The position numbers were made by a program, and so were the translations under genes. Under the pieces are notes generated by a model. It had not been told where the DNA came from. It made no database searches and saw only the letters and a list, made by a program, of their open reading frames with translations. This document shows, one piece after another, positions 2,816 through 41,216 of a stretch of 41,756 nucleotides of DNA; the stretch's first letter is position 1, and each line of letters begins with the position of its first letter. Location: contig NC_068995.1 in assembly GCF_001194135.2 (NCBI RefSeq), forward strand, positions 411,920 through 453,675. The letters run 5' to 3'. This DNA is from Octopus bimaculoides. Its lineage: Eukaryota.

Positions 2816-3346
2816 ATGGTGATGTATTTGAATAAAGATGTTTTACTGGGGCCAGTTTCCTGCGTCGATACGACAGGAGCTAGCGTGAAATTAGAACCGG
2901 CAATCTCTGACATTGTTTCTCTTTCCGTTCCCTCCTCAACTCACAGTATGGTTACTACTACTACTACAGCTACTATTGGTGCCATTACCACTACTACTAC
3001 TACTACTACAGCTGATTTTTCTCTCTCTGGAGTTCTTCATGTCGTTGATAATGTTGATGCTAAGGTGTCGTCAGGTTTTTCCTGGAGCAGCCCTGGCGCT
3101 CTCTCCTCAGTCATCCACTCACCGTCGTCGGTTCAATCCCCGATCGTATCGCCCGAAAGCCCCACGACGAACGCATTTCATGTCGATGACCACCTCCACT
3201 ATAATCACAACCACAGTCAACATCAATACCAAAACGGCCACCACCGCTACCGACCTCTCTACCCACGGCCGGAGATGACCATGGAATTAAGTACGGTTGT
3301 CGACAGCCCATTGTCTGTGTCGACACCTTCTTCACCGTCGTCGTCG

Positions 3347-3377
<31 letters not shown>

Positions 3378-3820
3378 CATCATCTCCTTATTCATCTTCG
3401 TCGCTGTCATTTTCTCCTCTTCATACCGCCGACCGCAAAGTGCCCGCGTTAAAATCGAACCTGCAACAGTTATTACCACAAAACCGACCGCAAAATGAAC
3501 GACAGCCCAAGTCTCAGCTTCCGATGGAGTCGAAACCGCAACCACAACAACCGGATGTGAAGGCAGCCGTAGCATGTCCGGTTTTGTTACCCGCCTCCGC
3601 CGCACCGTGCAAGGATTCTGTCGTGCTTTTGAACTCTGTCAACACAACTGTAGAAGCAACAACAACAACAGCATCGTCGTCATCGTCGTCATCATTAGCA
3701 GCACCAAGAACAAAAGCAACAACAACAACAAGGAGAAAAATAACGGAAATGACAAAAGCAACGAGACCGCCGATAATATCACGATCACCACCATCATCAT
3801 CATCGTCATCGTCATCATCG

Positions 3821-3852
<32 letters not shown>

Positions 3853-5488
3853 GTCATCATCATCATCGTCAATACCAATAATATCCTCATCGACTGACTC
3901 CGTTGACGAGTTGAAAAGAAAACAAACAAGTCCGGAAAAAAACTGCGGTGCCAAGCGACGTAACGGGCCCACGACGAAGAAAAAGCGTTACACCAAGTCA
4001 CGAATTCGAAACTGTAACCCTTTGATCGTGATGAAAATGAAGAAAAACAGACGAATGAAAGCGAACGACCGAGAACGTTCTCGAATGCACAGCTTAAACG
4101 ATGCTTTGGATTGTCTTCGAGAAGTTCTACCGAATTATTCCGACGAAGGCAAACTGACCAAAATCGAAACGCTGCGTTTCGCGCACAATTACATCTGGAC
4201 CCTGAGTGAAGCCCTTAAATTGATGGACACCGCTGAGAGTAAAGGGGACTTTGGTGACATCCCCGAAAAGCTGGCGACTCTGGGTTTGTTTGCACGTCTT
4301 TCTCAACATAAACACCACCACCATTATCATCATCACCACCACCACCGACAACAACATCCACTACAACTGCAGCCTCAACCACAGCAACAACTGTTACTAC
4401 AGCGACCACAACCACCTCAACAACAACAATTAGTATTACAACAGCAGTCATTACAACTGCAACATAAGCTACAACCACTAACACATCTATTACCACCACT
4501 AGTACCACCACCAACACAACAATTGCCACTACCACCACCACCACAACAACAACAGATCTTACTTGCAAACGAAATAGAAATGGAAGAAGACGACGAAAAG
4601 GATGTTGTTAACAGTGATGGTGATGATGATGATGACGACGATGATGATGATGGTGATGATGAATCAGACGGGTTACTTAAACGGGTGGCCGATACCAGTT
4701 TTCTCCAAGACTTCCTCATGTCGCAGGAGAACGAACCAGTCACGACTTCCGGTCATCGCCATCATCATCACCATCATCATCACCATCATCATCACCGCCG
4801 CCGCCGCCACCTCCTCTGCCGTGAAGCTAATAACTACAACGACGCGGATGCTGTTGCCAATAGCAACGGGAATAACTCCTCTCTCTCCCCGCCATGGATA
4901 CCCGGTGACTATGGCAACAAGATCCACGCTATCAACAACAACAACAACAACAACAGCGACAGTGATATGGAAGTCAGCAGCAGCAGTGGCGGTGGTAGTA
5001 GAGGCAGTTGTTGCTGCAGTAGCAGCAGCAGTGGTTGTGGTGGTTGTAGTTGTTGCACCAGTAACCACAGTGACAGTGGTAGCAGTATTAGTAGCAGCGA
5101 CAGTAGTAGTAGTAGAAGTAGTAGTGTTAGTAGTGGTGGTAGCAACGACAACCTCGCCGACAGCGTCACCGGGGTTCGATCGCCTGACGGCCCCAACTGC
5201 TCTGCCGCCCCCGTCCACGACCGCCGCCCTCGCCGCAACCATCACCATCACCACCACCATCATCATCATCATCCTTACCAACTGCCACAACGCCAGCATC
5301 ATCAGCATCAACATCAACCTGAACAACAACTCACCAAACAGCCCCAACGCCACCTCTATTTTCAACAACATCAGCTGACCGTGGAACCGGGGCAGAATGA
5401 AAGCCTTCACTTCTCCACGGATTTCTCGACGCCAAAACCGAACTTTGACCTTCAAGATGACAATTTTGTCGAACTCACAAAGTTATGA
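2816..5488 (+). CDS. ngn: Neurogenin-family proneural bHLH transcription factor, single coding exon, 890 aa
   Basis: Uninterrupted ORF with strong start context (aaaATGG). The bHLH at 4049-4222 reads [65 protein letters not shown] and [16 protein letters not shown] are neurogenin-diagnostic (NeuroD has ETLRLAKNYI, Atonal has RERRRM). It is preceded by a basic KKKRYTKSR stretch. The rest of the protein is low-complexity. Confidence 0.95.
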
Positions 5489-5510: not shown

Positions 5511-6297
5511 AATAAAAGCAACAACAGCGACGACACCGCCACAGCCTCTACGTGGTTGTTTGATTTGCTAGCGATAACAGCCAAATCTTCCTCAAATTGC
5601 TACCGTCTTTAAATTAAAAAAACAAATGAAAGAGGATGCTTTCGGACAATGTAGTCCTAGATACATTATGGCTGAACCAACGATGGGACGTGATGACCAC
5701 AAGCGGAAGGCCTTTGATTCTACAGAAGCCTGCTCGATCAGCGTTGCCCCGGGCTAAACAGCTACAACAACAACAACAAAAAACCAGTTAAGAGAATTAA
5801 TCGTAATTGCAATGTGATAATGAAGACGAAAAGTCATTAAGAAAGAAACACCACATGACCAAAATGTTTCGGTATAAGGAAGTGACTGGATAGACACCCA
5901 CAGTATATTACTGGTAACGATTTAATCGCCAAAACTCTTTGTGCCAATCTAAAAAAAAAAAATCCAACAAAAACCGTATAAGCAGCAATACAGAGCTCGA
6001 GCATGGGCTCGGCCGGCACCACTAAAACAACACACACACACACACACATCGTATTTGATGATTTTGGATTATCTCAAGAATTTTTGTTAATTTAGAAATC
6101 AACTTTTTTTTTTGCAACTTACACAAAACGATGTTTTAGAAACTATCTATGGTGGCCTTGAATTACTGTAAAACTTCTATTAATAAAACAACCAAGAAAA
6201 TTAAGCTAACGATTACATAAGAGGAAACGACCATATAACAAGGACTATGGTGGCCTTGAAGTATCATTGTAATGAATATTTCATGAGTCATAATAAA
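5511..6297 (+). terminator. Candidate polyadenylation signals of neurogenin
   Basis: AATAAA at 5511-5516, 6182-6187 and 6292-6297. The last two are each preceded by TGTA and an identical 16-mer. Confidence 0.4.
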
Positions 6298-11838: not shown

Positions 11839-12592
11839 ACACACACATACGCGCGTGTATATATATATATATATATATNNNNNNNNNNNNNNNNNNNNNN
11901 NNNNNNNNNNNNNNNNNNNNNNNNNNNNNNNNNNNNNNNNNNNNNNNNNNNNNNNNNNNNNNNNNNNNNNNNNNNNNNNNNNNNNNNNNNNNNNNNNNNN
12001 NNNNNNNNNNNNNNNNNNNNNNNNNNNNNNNNNNNNNNNNNNNNNNNNNNNNNNNNNNNNNNNNNNNNNNNNNNNNNNNNNNNNNNNNNNNNNNNNNNNN
12101 NNNNNNNNNNNNNNNNNNNNNNNNTATACTCTCTCTCTTTCCTTTCCCGAGCGTCTAGTAACACTCCGTATCACAACCTCACGTTCTTGTTTTTTGTTAT
12201 TGTTTTTTGTCTTTTCCCTTTTTTTTTTAACTTATATATATATATATATATGCAGAAAGGGGTAAATTAATTTTTTTTAATATAAGAGCAAGTTTATATA
12301 GCCAATATGGACCAGCCCCAGACAAGCTTATGCAAATAATGGAAGAAAAAAAAATTATTTTAGAATAGTCAAACAGGCTGCAGTATCTAACTCAATCTTC
12401 CAGGTTTCAAATCGTCCTCACGTAAACTATTATACTTGTTACTATCTATGGTTGGGAAAGAAGCTCCACGTATACAGGTCATACAGCCACGCACACACAC
12501 ACACACACATATATCTATACACATTCATGCGCACGCATATGCACAACTCAACAAAAACATACTTCTCCACGACATCTCTAGTGTTGTCACTA

Positions 12593-12869: not shown

Positions 12870-13531
12870 NNNNNNNNNNNNNNNNNNNNNNNNNNNNNNN
12901 NNNNNNNNNNNNNNNNNNNNNNNNNNNNNNNNNNNNNNNNNNNNNNNNNNNNNNNNNNNNNNNNNNNNNNNNNNNNNNNNNNNNNNNNNNNNNNNNNNNN
13001 NNNNNNNNNNNNNNNNNNNNNNNNNNNNNNNNNNNNNNNNNNNNNNNNNNNNNNNNNNNNNNNNNNNNNNNNNNNNNNNNNNNNNNNNNNNNNNNNNNNN
13101 NNNNNNNNNNNNNNNNNNNNNNNNNNNNNNNNNNNNNNNNNNNNNNNNNNNNNNNNNNNNNNNNNNNNNNNNNNNNNNNNNNNNNNNNNNNNNNNNNNNN
13201 NNNNNNNNNNNNNNNNNNNNNNNNNNNNNNNNNNNNNNNNNNNNNNNNNNNNNNNNNNNNNNNNNNNNNNNNNNNNNNNNNNNNNNNNNNNNNNNNNNNN
13301 NNNNNNNNNNNNNNNNNNNNNNNNNNNNNNNNNNNNNNNNNNNNNNNNNNNNNNNNNNNNNNNNNNNNNNNNNNNNNNNNNNNNNNNNNNNNNNNNNNNN
13401 NNNNNNNNNNNNNNNNNNNNNNNNNNNNNNNNNNNNNNNNNNNNNNNNNNNNNNNNNNNNNNNNNNNNNNNNNNNNNNNNNNNNNNNNNNNNNNNNNNNN
13501 NNNNNNNNNNNNNNNNNNNNNNNNNNNNNNN

Positions 13532-19181: not shown

Positions 19182-19365
19182 ATGATGATGATGATGATGA
19201 TGATGGTGGTGGAGTGATAATGAAGATGATGATGACTGCGAGGACGGCGATGATGATGATGATGATGATGATGATGAGGGTAACGACGACGACATCGACG
19301 AGAGCGATGACGCTGACGCTGACGCTAACGACACCTTTGATGACGATGATGATGATGATGATGAT
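19182..19365. repeat. (GAT)n/(GAC)n trinucleotide microsatellite cluster
   Basis: Read directly; it generates the spurious poly-M/poly-D ORF 18980-19543. Confidence 0.9.
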
Positions 19366-20824: not shown

Positions 20825-21955
20825 TTAATAATTAATAGAACAACACACCTTTTGACTGATTCAGCAATGAAGTCGGTGTCATTCCTCTTCAACATAATGT
20901 TTTCATAATGTTTTTTAGACTCCTAGTCAGGAGAGACCCGGCGGCACTCGTGACCCTTTTTGGGTGCTTAACAAGCTCCTTGAGTGTTACTATTTCTTGC
21001 TTTCTTCCTATCAGAGAAGTGGGGAAGAGAGTAGAAGTTTATCCTCAGACTGAAGAATTCGTCTGAATATTTTACAATATGGACTTCACGAAAAATACTC
21101 AAGAACCAGATGGACTAGGAGACGTTTTAGCTCAATCGTTTCGTTTCTCTCATTCTTACCTTCTTTCTTTCCCCCCCTCCCTCTCTCTCCCTCTCTCTCT
21201 TTCTCTCTCTATTTATAAGTATGAGCATTTACTTATGCTTATATTTATGAGTAATGTCTCTTTTCTGATGTGTTTGTGTGTTTGTATGACAGTTTTAATA
21301 CAAAATCACAACAGTCAACGCAACATCTTTCAACAGAAAATAAAGAAATACATTTTTTCAGCAGCAGACGATGATGAATTAAGAATATTATAACATATTT
21401 TGTTGGACAAATGGCTGTTACTAGACATTTCGATCTTCTTTTCGGTGATCAACTATGATATTTTTTTCATTTTTTAAATAAATTTCAGCGAAATTTCACA
21501 GCCTGTAAATTTCTCTTCACCCCCCCACCCCACCCGCCATGCAATCGTCAAAGCTTAGAAGATCCGGGTTCTTACACAACGTTACCCCAACTCCCATAAC
21601 ATCCTTGAGAATATTAATGATACTTGAACAAGGTATACACATAGGNNNNNNNNNNNNNNNNNNNNNNNNNNNNNNNNNNNNNNNNNNNNNNNNNNNNNNN
21701 NNNNNNNNNNNNNNNNNNNNNNNNNNNNNNNNNNNNNNNNNNNNNNNNNNNNNNNNNNNNNNNNNNNNNNNNNNNNNNNNNNNNNNNNNNNNNNNNNNNN
21801 NNNNNNNNNNNNNNNNNNNNNNNNNNNNNNNNNNNNNNNNNNNNNNNNNNNNNNNNNNNNNNNNNNNNNNNNNNNNNNNNNNNNNNNNNNNNNNNNNNNN
21901 NNNNNNNNNNNNNNNNNNNNNNNNNNNNNNNNNNNNNNNNNNNNNNNTCTCTCTC

Positions 21956-21991
<36 letters not shown>

Positions 21992-23194
21992 CCCCTTCAC
22001 TCTTTCCCGTTTTTCTTAACATGCGGGTGCTACAACATATTTGCAGATACATCGACACACCAACGCACTCATATGACACATACATACACATACACCCACC
22101 AACACAAACATACACACACGCACACACGCTTATACACAGACACTTAAATATTCATCTTTTACCCTCAGCTACATTCCAATTGTTATTATTGTTGTTGTCG
22201 TTGTTACTTGTTTACTTCTTTTCTGATAATCTCGCAGCTAAGTGAATATTTCTTTATCTGAGACAAGAAGAGATTTTTGTCTTTGTTTCGTTTTTTTTTT
22301 TTTTGTCTTGTACTGATGAGGGTATCCTTTCCCTTTTAGTGGCTATTTCTTCCCGCCCCCTCCCCCACCCCACTGCTTCTGTTTTCCCAAATTGCATGAT
22401 GACCCTTATTGGTTAAGCAATATTTTTATATATCCACAAGTATATGACTTACATACATACATACATATGTATACATGTTGATACNNNNNNNNNNNNNNNN
22501 NNNNNNNNNNNNNNNNNNNNNNNNNNNNNNNNNNNNNNNNNNNNNNNNNNNNNNNNNNNNNNNNNNNNNNNNNNNNNNNNNNNNNNNNNNNNNNNNNNNN
22601 NNNNNNNNNNNNNNNNNNNNNNNNNNNNNNNNNNNNNNNNNNNNNNNNNNNNNNNNNNNNNNNNNNNNNNNNNNNNNNNNNNNNNNNNNNNNNNNNNNNN
22701 NNNNNNNNNNNNNNNNNNNNNNNNNNNNNNNNNNNNNNNNNNNNNNNNNNNNNNNNNNNNNNNNNNNNNNNNNNNNNNNNNNNNNNNNNNNNNNNNNNNN
22801 NNNNNNNNNNNNNNNNNNNNNNNNNNNNNNNNNNNNNNNNNNNNNNNNNNNNNNNNNNNNNNNNNNNNNNNNNNNNNNNNNNNNNNNNNNNNNNNNNNNN
22901 NNNNNNNNNNNNNNNNNNNNNNNNNNNNNNNNNNNNNNNNNNNNNNNNNNNNNNNNNNNNNNNNNNNNNNNNNNNNNNNNNNNNNNNNNNNNNNNNNNNN
23001 NNNNNNNNNNNNNNNNNNNNNNNNNNNNNNNNNNNNNNNNNNNNNNNNNNNNNNNNNNNNNNNNNNNNNNNNNNNNNNNNNNNNNNNNNNNNNNNNNNNN
23101 NNNNNNNNNGGGGGGGGGGGTACTACTTGAAAACCTCATTATTGTATCGTGTGGCTATGAGTAGAAAGTGAAGCATAGAACTTATACGGGTCCA

Positions 23195-31315: not shown

Positions 31316-32229
31316 GCGTGTGCAGTCATATATCTGCCCACTTATATGCGCGTGCGTGTACGTATGACATTGCCGGCATCCGAAATCAAGTACGTAACTT
31401 GGTATACATATATACACAAACACACACACACATTATATATATATATATATATNNNNNNNNNNNNNNNNNNNNNNNNNNNNNNNNNNNNNNNNNNNNNNNN
31501 NNNNNNNNNNNNNNNNNNNNNNNNNNNNNNNNNNNNNNNNNNNNNNNNNNNNNNNNNNNNNNNNNNNNNNNNNNNNNNNNNNNNNNNNNNNNNNNNNNNN
31601 NNNNNNNNNNNNNNNNNNNNNNNNNNNNNNNNNNNNNNNNNNNNNNNNNNNNNNNNNNNNNNNNNNNNNNNNNNNNNNNNNNNNNNNNNNNNNNNNNNNN
31701 NNNNNNNNNNNNNNNNNNNNNNNNNNNNNNNNNNNNNNNNNNNNNNNNNNNNNNNNNNNNNNNNNNNNNNNNNNNNNNNNNNNNNNNNNNNNNNNNNNNN
31801 NNNNNNNNNNNNNNNNNNNNNNNNNNNNNNNNNNNNNNNNNNNNNNNNNNNNNNNNNNNNNNNNNNNNNNNNNNNNNNNNNNNNNNNNNNNNNNNNNNNN
31901 NNNNNNNNNNNNNNNNNNNNNNNNNNNNNNNNNNNNNNNNNNNNNNNNNNNNNNNNNNNNNNNNNNNNNNNNNNNNNNNNNNNNNNNNNNNNNNNNNNNN
32001 NNNNNNNNNNNNNNNNNNNNNNNNNNNNNNNNNNNNNNNNNNNNNNNNNNNNNNNNNNNNNNNNNNNNNNNNNNNNNNNNNNNNNNNNNNNNNNNNNNNN
32101 NNNNNNNNNNNNNNNNNNNNNNNNNNNNNNNNNNNNNNNNNNNNNNGATTGTTTGGAGCACTTGAATACCTTTTCCAAATGTGCAACCACAACTGGTCAT
32201 CAGGGAACGCCTAATTATATATCATAATT

Positions 32230-33594: not shown

Positions 33595-36371
33595 GTGAGT
33601 ATGTATAAAACTTTTACCTATGTCACTACCACCATCCCCCATGTCCTCCCCACTACCAGTGGTCTGCCTCCGATGACAGCTGACCACTTAGTATCCTATA
33701 ACACCTTTAAACACTTCGCCCTTGAAGGCAGATGACCACCTTTAAACCACCCCCGCCATCTCACCATCTCCGCCCACTCACAAACAGATAACAGATGACC
33801 ATTACTACCACCGCCACCATCATAAGCAGCACACCCATCACCACCTCCGTCATCACTAACGCCATCCATCTACTCTCGACGACAGCACAGCCTATCATCA
33901 GCACTGACCGTTGGTCAATAGACGCATAAATCAATTGAGGGTGAAGCTGGAGTTGGGGCTGGGAGGGGTGGCGGTTTGCGTTAACCAAAGGTGTTGAAGG
34001 AACTAATGGCAAAAGAAAAAACAAAAACAAATATATAATAACTGACCAGTTAAGCCACTCGACATAAATGTAGATCTAAAGTCCGGCAGCATATATAAGA
34101 TAAGGTGTTCTAATCTGGTCACTTCCAGCCAGCTGCCAGGCCTCAGGCCTCCACAGTAGTAATAGTTGTAGTAGTGGGGGTAATGTTGTTAGTAGTAGTA
34201 GTAGTAGTAGTAGCTGCTGCCGACTAGCCGCTGGTCAAGTGTTTCTTATTCTTTTGTACAGTCTGCTTTACTCCTCCCCCTATACCACTCTCACCCACAT
34301 CCCCAGTCATACAAAAGTGGGAGATAGATCAAAAGGAGTAAAAAAAAAAAAAAAATGAATTCTGAACGAGATTCACTTTCGAAATTTAATTTATATCTTT
34401 GTCCACTTGACCACCGCCCGTCTTTATGTCCCACCCCAACTATCCGCTACCCAGTACTCGGCTATGCGCTTTTCCCCTTACAATTCTTGCTAATCCGGCT
34501 CTTTAGATTGGTGCTATTTTGCCGAATGGACGAAGGACAAAGGTAACCTCGGCAAGAATTGAACTCAGAGACTCGAAACAAATATAATGATTGTAAGATT
34601 CTTCATGTTCTGTATTCAAATCCTTCCTTGAGCGGCAAACTTAATCCGTTGCCTAGTTTAATAAACCACCAACTAGAACTCTGGGTACCTTTAACCAGTT
34701 CCACTCTGTTCCAATGCTTCGAGCCAGGTTTCCGATTTGAGTATGCCTTACCACTCTCGCTCCCTTTAGAGTGAGACTATGTATCGAGTGACACGGGGGG
34801 GGGGGGCCTTTCCTTTCGACGAAAAGGTAAGTAAACAAAAGAAGAAGAAAAATACACAAAACGTTTGGGTCGGCAAATGGTCGTTTGAGAAGGAATGAAA
34901 TTTACAAAATAAAAATTGATGGTGTTGATTGTTAATAGTGTAGAATAGAATGTGAAGGAGGAGGAGGAGGAGGATAACGATGATGATGATGGTGAAGAAG
35001 AAGAAGAAGAAGAAGAAGAAGAATCAGTCGAAGAATGAAAAAACATAATGTTCTATTGAAAACTACCCCATAATTTTCATATGAAGTGTGGACAAGAGTT
35101 TTGAAGTTAAAAGATGTGTGGGTGGATGTGGGTAGGTATTGTGGTTTAGGGGTGGTGGTGGTGTAACCAAACAGGTAGTGGTCCCTTTCTGGACGGTTGG
35201 CGCCGCTCAACCATGGCTTACCTCAGCTTTGTCGGTTTGTTTAATGGGCGGGACGAATGGAGCGTCTCGTCTTGAACGTCTCTTTCATATGGAACAGACA
35301 TTCGGCGGTGATTAATGTATCAATGCACCGCCGCATCCAACTGGAAAACACACATACACACACACACTGATATATATATNNNNNNNNNNNNNNNNNNNNN
35401 NNNNNNNNNNNNNNNNNNNNNNNNNNNNNNNNNNNNNNNNNNNNNNNNNNNNNNNNNNNNNNNNNNNNNNNNNNNNNNNNNNNNNNNNNNNNNNNNNNNN
35501 NNNNNNNNNNNNNNNNNNNNNNNNNNNNNNNNNNNNNNNNNNNNNNNNNNNNNNNNNNNNNNNNNNNNNNNNNNNNNNNNNNNNNNNNNNNNNNNNNNNN
35601 NNNNNNNNNNNNNNNNNNNNNNNNNNNNNNNNNNNNNNNNNNNNNNNNNNNNNNNNNNNNNNNNNNNNNNNNNNNNNNNNNNNNNNNNNNNNNNNNNNNN
35701 NNNNNNNNNNNNNNNNNNNNATATATATATATATATACAAGTACATGCATGTGTATACATATATAAACACACCTACACCCACACACACCTATTTATCCAT
35801 CTGTCCACATATTCACACATACTTTTTATGCTTACGGATGTACGTATGTATATATGCATGTATGTATATACACACGCGCACGTGCACATACATGCTATTC
35901 ATACATCCATGCATACACACACACACACGCACGCACACACATACACACACGTGCATACATATATGCACATATACATCTAGATAATTTGATATATATTTCT
36001 CCGTATTTCCTTCGGCACAATATGCTCTGAGTTCAAATTTCACCAGGGCCAAACTTGAATTGAATTCTTCTGAGGTCGATGGTGCTGGGTATCACCCACC
36101 CGTCAACATTGATGACTGTGTCAAATTCGGGAAGTGTTACTGTTGACGGCGATCATGCTTTGGGAGAAAGGCATACAGGCCTTATATTGCCAGTAACCTG
36201 TCGACCAAAACAAAATCTTTGTCCCTGGTCCAGAAAGTATTTTCAGATAAACTTCTTTTACCAGGATGCTTCGCCAAATAATATCGCCTACATCGACATG
36301 AATTGCATTTATACATCAAACGTATTGTTAGAGTGGAAAATAGATGGACGAGATAGGAGTTATCTCTATTT

Positions 36372-39628: not shown

Positions 39629-40667
39629 TGAAGAAAAAGAAGAAGAAGGCGTTAAATTGTTTGAATCGTAAGAGTTTTGGAAGCAATGCCTTGTGGTATT
39701 TGATCCAGTTTAGTATTTTTTCTTAATTTATTTGCTGTTTTATAACTTTATTGGTTCGTTTTTCTTTTCGTTATGCTATGTTCACAATATTGAATGTCCC
39801 AAAAAAAACGAAAAAAAAAATCTACGAAAAACTACAAATAAAAAACAAAAAACGGAAAGTAATCCACAAAACTACACAATAAAAATGACAAAGAAAGCAG
39901 GAAACAAAATGGCGGTAACAAAGTCAAGTTAACTTTTCTTATTGATTTGATTTGTATTTCTTTTTGTTTTGCTTTGGTTGTTCGTTGAAACTGTCAAGTT
40001 AAATGCGGGTTACAGTGTTGTTCTATCGCCAGCATGGTTATTTGGCCCTTCTTGCATATATTTTATTTTATTTTTAAAAGATGGAAGTTAATTTCTTGTC
40101 ACTGCAATTGTGTAATTGTATAATCGTGTCTGTAGAATTTGACAGGGTGATTTGTATAAATATTTTTGACACTTTCTTGTTTCATTGTCAGACAACATTT
40201 TAAGGGAGCCAACATATTTCAGTGGGGGCCAATATTTCGAATAATATAAAATAATACAACACAATCTTCAATGTAAAACCTCGACAATCAACATGGCGGC
40301 TCAGCGTGTCGTCCATTCAGCGTTTAAATGCATTCACACACACACACACGCACACACACATATATGCATATATAGATATACACACACACACATGCATACA
40401 TATACACGCATACATACAAATGTACTACGTACGTACATACATATATACATACATACGTACATACATACACACTCGTACTTATATGTCTGTGTAAATATAC
40501 ATACATACACACAGACATATATACACACGCACACACAGACAGTTATACAAATTACAGATGTATGCGTATGTATGCATATGTTTATGTTATATAAAGATAA
40601 ATAGATGGATAGAGAGATAGAGAGAGAGAGATGTATAAATGCATACATACATATATATTAGAGAGGA

Positions 40668-40677
40668 NNNNNNNNNN
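40668..40677. other. Assembly gap (one of eight: 1650-1659, 11879-12124, 12870-13531, 21646-21947, 22485-23109, 31453-32146, 35380-35720, 40668-40677)
   Basis: N runs, nearly all flanked by microsatellites or homopolymers. Confidence 0.99.
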
Positions 40678-41096
40678 ACATACATACACACAGACATATA
40701 TACACACGCACACACAGACAGTTATACAAATTACAGATGTATGCGTATGTATGCATATGTTTATGTTATATAAAGATAAATAGATGGATAGAGGGATAGA
40801 GAGAGAGAGATGTATAAATGCATACATACATATATATTAGAGAGGAAAGGCCAACAAAGACCAAGGCAGGACGAGTATCTCAAGCCATTTAGAATATTTA
40901 ATTAGAGTAAGGTGAATTTGAAGTAAATAATTAATTAATTAGTAAATTGATTACTTAATTATTGGATGCCTTACAGCTGTTTCTAGGATATTCCAAGTGA
41001 TTGGTTAACATCTCCATACACTGGGTATTTCGCCATCAGAGACAAGATAGTTAGGTAAGAAAGTTCTAGATAGGGAATTCACAGTTTATAAAGGGA

Positions 41097-41216
41097 TAAA
41101 ATAGTAGATCGAAGAATAAAGAGTAAAACAGTAGATCGAAGAATAAAGAGTAAAACAGTAGAGAGAAGAATAAAGAGTAAAACAGTAGAGAGAAGAATAA
41201 AGACAGAAGAATAAAG
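41097..41216. repeat. 27-bp minisatellite, about 4.4 copies
   Basis: Unit TAAAACAGTAGA(TC/GA)GAAGAATAAAGAG starting at 41097, 41124, 41151 and 41178, plus a partial unit. Confidence 0.95.

Follow-up and report, generated by a model that had tools for sequence, protein, structure and literature searches.

An 890-codon neurogenin reading frame in Octopus bimaculoides combines a conserved bHLH core with low-complexity tails

Introduction

Canonical neurogenins, among them vertebrate Neurog1-3, neurogenin-1 of Lingula and the proteins of Saccoglossus and Doryteuthis, are 160–360 amino acids (aa) long and have in common a pre-basic motif and a basic helix–loop–helix (bHLH) domain with the KANDRER signature, at 68%–86% identity to the octopus domain considered here. 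The closest relative with a solved structure is mouse NeuroD1 (PDB 2QL2), which has the same bHLH fold and occupies E-box DNA as a heterodimer with E47; NeuroD proteins differ, however, in carrying KANARER and KLSKIETLRLA, their bHLH identity is 64%–71%, and octopus has a separate NEUROD gene. Long relatives of the arthropod TAP/neurogenin type (P0002-P0006, P0008-P0011; 490–580 aa) are likewise extended by low-complexity sequence, with Ser/Gln/His-rich C-terminal regions, which indicates that the neurogenin family can grow by low-complexity accretion. More generally, vertebrate and Drosophila developmental factors carry poly-Q, poly-A and poly-H coding microsatellites in disordered regions that are subject to slippage and relaxed constraint. 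Here we describe the neurogenin gene of Octopus bimaculoides, NEUROG, at positions 2816–5488 of a 41,756-nucleotide (nt) stretch of chromosome CM046615.1 (assembly GCA_001194135.2), the whole of which we call the window.

The octopus protein departs from all of these systems. Canonical neurogenins have no counterpart of its tails. The long arthropod-type relatives differ from it in that they grew independently, show no likeness to it outside the bHLH, are extended mostly at the C terminus and reach about two thirds of its length at most. Compared with the homopolymer-rich developmental factors, accretion is extreme, with about 780 of the 890 residues lying outside the core, on both of its sides. 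We consider it very likely that positions 2816–5488 constitute the single-exon NEUROG of O. bimaculoides, the same gene as that deposited under HM369392 and the orthologue of Ov-ngn of O. vulgaris, and that its product combines a constrained core with low-complexity tails under relaxed but real constraint.

Neither the gene nor the complete sequence of its orthologue is a discovery, both having been published before. An O. bimaculoides NEUROG cDNA was recovered and deposited as HM369392 by Shigeno et al. (2015; PMC4657373), who reported expression in embryonic neurogenic cords, whereas Deryckere et al. (2021, eLife; PMC8384421) found Ov-ngn in O. vulgaris Iso-Seq transcriptomes, assigned it to the NEUROG/TAP clade and localized its expression to the lateral-lip progenitor zone; between them, the two papers record expression in neurogenic ectoderm and the lateral lips. 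The 957-aa protein Ov-NGN, derived from an Iso-Seq isoform and printed in Supplementary file 6 of the latter study, contains every block described below. The searchable text of the two papers makes no mention of the length, repeats or disorder of NEUROG, and for neurogenins of other cephalopods the literature search yielded no usable sequences or lengths. All that is new is the remark that the octopus neurogenin is far longer than any other member of its family, a point apparently not discussed in print.

An intact, apparently unspliced coding sequence

The gene occupies a single uninterrupted open reading frame (ORF) on the forward strand, running from ATG to TGA through 890 codons with neither an N nor an internal stop, so that the intact frame proposed in a sequence-only reading of the window stands, as does the cephalopod origin that the same reading had suggested. 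The other five frames of the interval contain 31–73 stops each, and their longest open stretches span 132–269 codons; filled with stops as they are, they show that the open coding frame is not merely an effect of repetitive DNA. The start context of Met1 is GAAAATGG, with A at −3 and G at +4, and the closest in-frame stop on its 5′ side lies at 2624–2626. The principal parts of the gene are as follows (HCR, hybridization chain reaction).

2816..5488, + strand: coding sequence (CDS) of O. bimaculoides NEUROG (neurogenin), single exon; 890 aa plus TGA, collinear with Ov-NGN
3977..4048, + strand: pre-basic motif found family-wide, aa 388–411; consensus of 40 neurogenins KKKRxxKxRxRxRSP
4049..4201, + strand: bHLH domain (PF00010), aa 412–462; 100% identical in O. 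vulgaris
4202..4306, + strand: end of helix 2 and post-bHLH extension to LFARLSQ, aa 463–497; common to the Doryteuthis pealeii neurogenin P0015
5489..5762, + strand: 3′ untranslated region (UTR), minimum extent; O. vulgaris HCR oligonucleotides at 5544, 5682, 5709 and 5737, 94% identity

Global alignment with Ov-NGN, which shows that the two genes are the same or direct orthologues, matches the proteins collinearly from MVMYLNK through to FVELTKL. Of 880 aligned positions, 793 (90.1%) are identical; the bHLH is the same residue for residue, the order of tracts and islands, the start and the C terminus agree, and hardly any residue differs in the first 46 and the last 38 aa. Twenty-one indels of 1–20 aa, which give the O. 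vulgaris protein a net surplus of 67 aa, all fall within low-complexity sequence and leave aa 388–497 untouched. Every one of the 21 is in frame, in a comparison of two ORFs in which compensated frameshifts would not show.

The transcript evidence comes from O. vulgaris sequences. The probe for colorimetric in situ hybridization (ISH), obtained by reverse transcription PCR from embryo cDNA, is a contiguous 836 nt that runs in frame from aa 193 through both Ser tracts of the middle of the N-terminal tail to helix 2. Of the 50 HCR oligonucleotides listed, which were designed on the O. vulgaris transcript, 46 map to single sites, collinearly and with the expected pair spacing of 27 nt, between 3255 and 5762, a span that takes in the two tails and 270 nt or more of the 3′ UTR. 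Taken together with the Iso-Seq-derived protein, the contiguous ISH probe and the collinear oligonucleotides suggest that, at least in O. vulgaris, no intron is removed from the CDS in the mRNA used for the published expression studies. The absence of introns claimed by the sequence-only reading is borne out as far as such material can show, and transcripts that splice out the repeat blocks or end before them are not what is seen in the sister species, where the probes tile these blocks and the 3′ UTR.

The same comparison bears on whether the long ORF might be an assembly or annotation artefact, created where repeats were collapsed or expanded in a scaffold with many gaps. The window does contain six large N gaps and many microsatellites, and an exact-sequence look-up of the 890-aa protein in a collection of 15 billion proteins gave no match. 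Against this stand the complete absence of N from the ORF and an independent, transcript-derived O. vulgaris sequence with the same architecture from end to end, by which the artefact explanation is effectively refuted. The exact protein is on record solely as a called gene on the assembly, and no octopus protein occurs among the matches listed in the search with the bHLH region. In view of these two negative look-ups, NEUROG may be missing from standard octopus genome annotations, perhaps through low-complexity masking.

Neurogenin identity of the core

Pfam recognizes HLH alone in the protein (PF00010, aa 412–462, E = 5e-16, 58.7 bits against a cut-off of 20.7). A full-length word-indexed search was swamped by low-complexity words and yielded only 14 bHLH matches, and the bHLH region alone was used instead. 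The named proteins among the top 120 matches are all neurogenin-1, -2 or -3, bar one ‘Neurogenic differentiation factor’. The best of them is the neurogenin of the squid Doryteuthis pealeii (P0015, UZQ18776.1; 86% bHLH identity), followed by neurogenins of spiders, hemichordates, echinoderms, a brachiopod and many vertebrates. The two best unnamed relatives are 80%–84% identical to the octopus bHLH and Lingula 68%. Identity to the closest neurogenins is thus 80%–86% as against 64%–71% to NeuroD, and the family assignment of the sequence-only reading proved right.

Diagnostic residues agree with this placement. The neurogenin-type KANDRER of the basic region and the helix-2 signature are both present, as are D418, T448 and F455, which are invariant or nearly so in an alignment of 40 neurogenins, and the pre-basic KKR(Y)xKSRxRxR(S)P motif. 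In published trees, Ov-NGN, with its identical bHLH, and Ob-NGN (HM369392) fall inside the NEUROG/TAP clade (PMC8384421, PMC4657373). Because of the homology to NeuroD1–E47 (PDB 2QL2), the octopus protein presumably heterodimerizes with an E-protein and binds E-boxes.

A further motif, SPxx[YF]SDTS[DE]G[YF]x[YF]E, ends at least 12 short neurogenins, including P0135-P0137, P0144, P0151, P0161, P0165, P0173, P0180, P0221 and P0228. The octopus protein gives no match to a profile hidden Markov model of this C-terminal motif, and inspection of the squid sequence by eye does not reveal it either.

The longest protein of the family

Scanned exhaustively with HMMER, 1.84 billion representative proteins gave 3466 matches at E ≤ 1e-3. 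Among the relatives, the median length is 270 aa (interquartile range 227–314, 95th percentile 416), and the longest credible ones measure 562–579 aa. At 890 and 957 aa, the two octopus proteins are 3.3–3.5 times as long as the family median and about 1.5 times as long as the next longest credible relative, and the unusual size that the sequence-only reading had singled out holds against the family as a whole. The 825-aa P0007 of Polypterus was rejected as a long neurogenin, since its bHLH is fused to a helicase domain, apparently through faulty annotation; together with it, P0012 (768 aa, Chinchilla) and P0013 (607 aa, Diamesa) are probable gene-model fusions of a helicase or zinc-finger region with a bHLH. 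Inflation is not general to the octopus bHLH genes sampled in the O. vulgaris supplement, a small set in which ASCL1 (243 aa), NEUROD (256 aa) and SOXB1 are short and near ordinary size.

The tails are without homologues in these searches. In the 150 best HMMER matches nothing aligned to aa 1–276 or 564–890, and the best-matching stretch lay within aa 277–563 of the query. A query composed of the non-repetitive islands without the bHLH gave no match at E ≤ 1e-3 among 8000 candidates, a result that is weak alone and with which the HMMER scan agrees.

Where in the animal tree the growth took place is narrowed, at best, to within cephalopods. The relative from Owenia fusiformis has 322 aa, and the one squid sequence available, P0015, has 167 aa and is without tails; it has the post-bHLH extension up to LFARLSQ in common with the octopus protein and diverges from it completely beyond that point. 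Residues 1–33 of P0015 are unrelated sequence right up to the basic region, without the pre-basic KKRYxKSRxRxRSP motif. The record may therefore be incomplete, mis-assembled or an alternative 5′ end, and 167 aa is not to be taken as the true size of the squid protein. The possibility that molluscan orthologues are all of similar length, which the sequence-only reading named as a counter-argument, is addressed only indirectly by these records.

A stronger proposal would be that the two tails arose only in octopods and that squid, Nautilus and other molluscs have none. The islands and His/Gln/acidic tracts of the tails would then alter the proneural factor, for example through targeting to nuclear bodies or condensates, altered stability or new cofactors, and so have a share in the unusual behaviour of progenitors in the octopus brain. 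In keeping with this proposal are tails that look translated, are constrained in part and have no homologue in our searches, and a single squid sequence in which they are missing. We regard it as unlikely. The length anomaly by itself says nothing on the evolution of brain size.

Low-complexity tails and conserved islands

The tails, of about 390 aa on each side of the core, are built from the following elements, run counts referring to uninterrupted stretches of one residue and arrays to those reported by Tandem Repeats Finder (TRF).

2816..3976, + strand: N-terminal tail, aa 1–387, Ser/Thr/Pro/His-rich, low complexity; conserved islands aa 1–46, 66–128 and 191–286
2987..3010, + strand: Thr8 tract, ACT-rich (run count)
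3338..3385, + strand: Ser16 tract, TCA x11, TCG x3, TCC, TCT; O. vulgaris version 4 aa longer
3674..3694, + strand: Ser7 tract (run count)
3794..3871, + strand: Ser26 tract, TCA x21 and TCG x5, a coding microsatellite; TRF array 3784–3871
4313..4345, + strand: first His tract, aa 500–510; identical in O. vulgaris
4346..4555, + strand: Gln/Pro/Leu-rich block, aa 511–580; four in-frame indels relative to O. vulgaris, 24 aa in total
4571..4669, + strand: acidic block, aa 586–618, containing D10; O. vulgaris version 20 aa longer
4622..4651, + strand: Asp10 tract, GAT x8 and GAC x2, inside the acidic block
4670..4756, + strand: non-repetitive acidic/hydrophobic island, aa 619–647; near-identical in O. 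vulgaris, HCR oligonucleotides 16 and 17 map there
4760..4795, + strand: His12 tract, (CAT CAT CAT CAC) x3; TRF array 4753–4796
4934..4954, + strand: Asn7 tract, AAC x7 (run count)
4976..5140, + strand: Ser/Gly/Cys-rich block, aa 721–775, within aa 721–810
5240..5272, + strand: His11 tract; same length in O. vulgaris
5372..5485, + strand: C-terminal conserved island, aa 853–890, ending in FVELTKL; weak predicted helix aa 883–889

All the tracts named in the sequence-only reading are where it had put them, including the 26 Ser at exactly 3794–3871, the three His tracts, the Asp run and poly-N. Two of its statements need correction. The Gln/Pro block does not follow directly on helix 2 but begins about 36 aa later, separated from it by some 35 conserved, non-repetitive residues and a His tract; and the description of about 800 aa of homopolymer is overstated, because runs of at least four identical residues hold only 153 of the 890 residues (17%), with several conserved non-repetitive islands between them. 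The tails are better called low-complexity sequence mixed with unique islands. Their bias is nonetheless visible in the composition of the protein, of which Ser makes up 17% and S, P, H, T, Q, D and N together 57%, with a mean hydropathy of −0.86 and block entropies as low as 0.9–2.5 bits. In the DNA of the tracts, as S26, N7, H12 and D10 illustrate, a single codon or two synonymous ones recur in nearly pure form.

Conservation between the two octopus species follows this mosaic. The N-terminal tail is 89.8% identical and the non-repetitive islands at least 90%, while aa 721–810 form the least conserved sub-region, at 83%. The acidic and hydrophobic island at aa 619–647, which includes the segment aa 620–638, is a candidate activation motif. 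The counterpart of Ser26 in the O. vulgaris ISH probe consists of (TCA)10 followed by an interrupted L/S/P/T/R/A stretch and is 7 aa longer, and the contrast between a pure and an interrupted version suggests that one lineage recently underwent a homogenizing expansion or that the tract decayed in the other lineage.

The AlphaFold2 prediction, run with a 40-sequence alignment that had no depth over the tails, confines confident folding to approximately aa 390–494. It comprises a helix–loop–helix with helices at aa 402–437 and 449–475 (predicted local distance difference test, pLDDT, 84–94) and short helices at aa 485–494; apart from a weak helix at aa 883–889, no secondary structure is predicted outside aa 402–494, and pLDDT is below 50 for 730 of the 890 residues.

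Selection on the core and the N-terminal tail

Ratios of non-synonymous to synonymous substitution (dN/dS, omega) were estimated by the Nei–Gojobori method on the region of the ISH probe and, for the C-terminal half, on the HCR 25-mers. The KKKRY motif and bHLH (76 codons) have an omega of 0.054 at a dS of 0.21. For the part of the N-terminal tail that is covered (aa 193–387, 194 codons), omega is 0.34 (dS 0.20; Fisher p = 9e-5 against omega = 1), and it is 0.44 (dS 0.16, p = 0.017) when runs of at least four residues are left out. Across the probe region, the numbers of differences at codon positions 1, 2 and 3 are 16, 14 and 37. A neutral simulation at K = 0.2 expects 63%–65% aa identity and roughly 6–10 new stops per tail, whereas the observed tails have 88%–90% identity and no stops; the neutral probability of finding no stop in the C-terminal tail is 0.002.

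These figures are also pertinent to the suggestion that the functional protein is short, made from an internal Met near the bHLH or as a minor spliced isoform, with most of the long ORF serving as untranslated leader and trailer. Such a protein would resemble the single squid neurogenin on record, could start at Met406 or Met408, just 5′ of the basic region, and would account for the lack of proteomic support for the long form. Yet the same frame is open from Met1 to the stop in two species where neutral drift would have brought in several stops per tail; the purely in-frame indels, the excess of third-position differences and the N-terminal omega all have the signature of coding sequence, Met1 has the favoured bases at −3 and +4, the alternative frames are closed, and a start at Met406 would drop the KKKRY motif that is conserved family-wide. 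Taken as a whole, this makes a short product highly improbable.

Proposed model and its weighing

Under our preferred reading, that of a constrained core between tails under relaxed but real constraint, the core would join the bHLH to the pre-basic KKKRY motif in front of it and to some 30 aa of cephalopod-specific extension behind it, all under strong purifying selection. By homology, it would pair with an E-protein on E-box DNA and drive neuronal commitment in embryonic neurogenic tissue, and NEUROG would activate differentiation genes such as neuroD. The tails, low in complexity and probably disordered, appear to have grown largely from imperfect coding microsatellites with the repeat units TCA/TCG, CAT/CAC, GAT/GAC, AAC, ACT and CAA/CAG/CCN, and their length would change by in-frame replication slippage, as the 21 indels and the net 67 aa relative to O. 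vulgaris suggest. The functional elements of the tails would be the conserved islands (aa 1–46, 66–128, 191–286, 620–638 and 853–890), possibly as activation, partner-binding or turnover motifs, and the homopolymer tracts would mostly be tolerated, fast-evolving spacers. That the tails are activation or condensate domains, as the sequence-only reading supposed, is pure inference.

Several observations weigh against this reading. The C-terminal tail has an omega of 0.51 (131 codons, p = 0.11), rising to 0.69 beyond aa 529 (101 codons, p = 0.34), so that constraint at the amino-acid level is weak there and not statistically significant; and the nucleotide comparison draws on published probe sequences, about 0.8 kb plus 25-mers, rather than on the full O. 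vulgaris cDNA. The use of Met1 as the start is a prediction from sequence. Sequence alone cannot separate an intronless transcript from genomic contamination, against which the tissue-specific ISH speaks. With an empty alignment over the tails, low pLDDT is only weak evidence of disorder; composition and AlphaFold2 both agree with the disorder predicted in the sequence-only reading, and it is the second of these that carries little weight. Finally, S/T-P sites of the cyclin-dependent kinase (CDK) type are not enriched, 15 being observed against 16.8 ± 3.4 expected from composition; the CDK ‘rheostat’ on vertebrate Neurog2 works via such sites.

In the main competing view, the tails are neutral passengers: microsatellite slippage would have inflated the disordered ends of a small neurogenin, selection would only keep the frame open, for example against truncated or aggregation-prone products, and what the tails do would not depend on their sequence. 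Besides the C-terminal omega of 0.5–0.7, not significantly below 1, this view is favoured by the differences in tract length between congeners (20 aa in the acidic block, 24 aa in the Q/P block, a pure as against an interrupted Ser26), by the near-pure codon repeats of the tracts within microsatellite-rich DNA and by tails that have no homologue in our searches, in a family whose arthropod members independently reached 490–580 aa. It is at odds with the N-terminal omega, which remains significantly below 1 when the runs are removed, and with islands at least 90% identical and protein ends that have hardly changed. We hold neutral passengers to be possible, if somewhat doubtful, and the data do not cleanly separate them from relaxed but real constraint, especially in the C-terminal tail. 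The claim that purifying selection has kept the frame open across the repeats stands with a qualification: the N-terminal omega, the in-frame indels and the absence of stops speak for it, and the C-terminal values do not reach significance. Constraint on the tails is relaxed, clearly so C-terminally, and tract lengths are free to vary.

NEUROG is among the few proneural regulators mapped in cephalopod embryos, and its true coding sequence matters for expression constructs, antibodies, CRISPR guides and orthology tables, the full-length product being 890 aa and not some 220 aa. Some 88% of the residues fall outside the core, in sequence that evolves by slippage, and tract lengths will consequently vary from one species to another and probably from one individual to the next. 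The gene is a tractable case in which to ask whether a master regulator gains a function from added low-complexity sequence or simply tolerates it.

Surrounding DNA

A TATA-like element near 2396–2403 is a candidate promoter signal, and AATAAA at 6182–6187 and 6292–6297, downstream of the mapped 3′ UTR, may act as poly(A) signals. Beyond the gene, the remaining 36 kb (5489–41756) contain no other credible protein-coding ORF, no tRNA and no Rfam family, and Pfam finds no match in the two largest other ORFs of the window. NEUROG looks like a gene at the edge of a gene-poor, microsatellite-rich stretch.

The six N gaps, of 246–694 nt, lie at 11879–12124, 12870–13531, 21646–21947, 22485–23109, 31453–32146 and 35380–35720. 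Most are flanked by dinucleotide-type microsatellites (TA/TG/CA), and the long ‘ORFs’ called there are artefacts of N translated as X. The segment 18980–19543 has a C/A-rich skew like that of NEUROG, but neither a Pfam match nor a long clean frame was found in it; about 31 copies of (ATG/CAT), concentrated at 19182–19277, produce spurious poly-M/D/S/H ORFs on both strands. Longer tandem units occur further downstream, a 179-bp unit being present twice at 40499–40847 (93% match) and a 27-bp unit 4.3 times at 41088–41203, near the end of the window (94% match).

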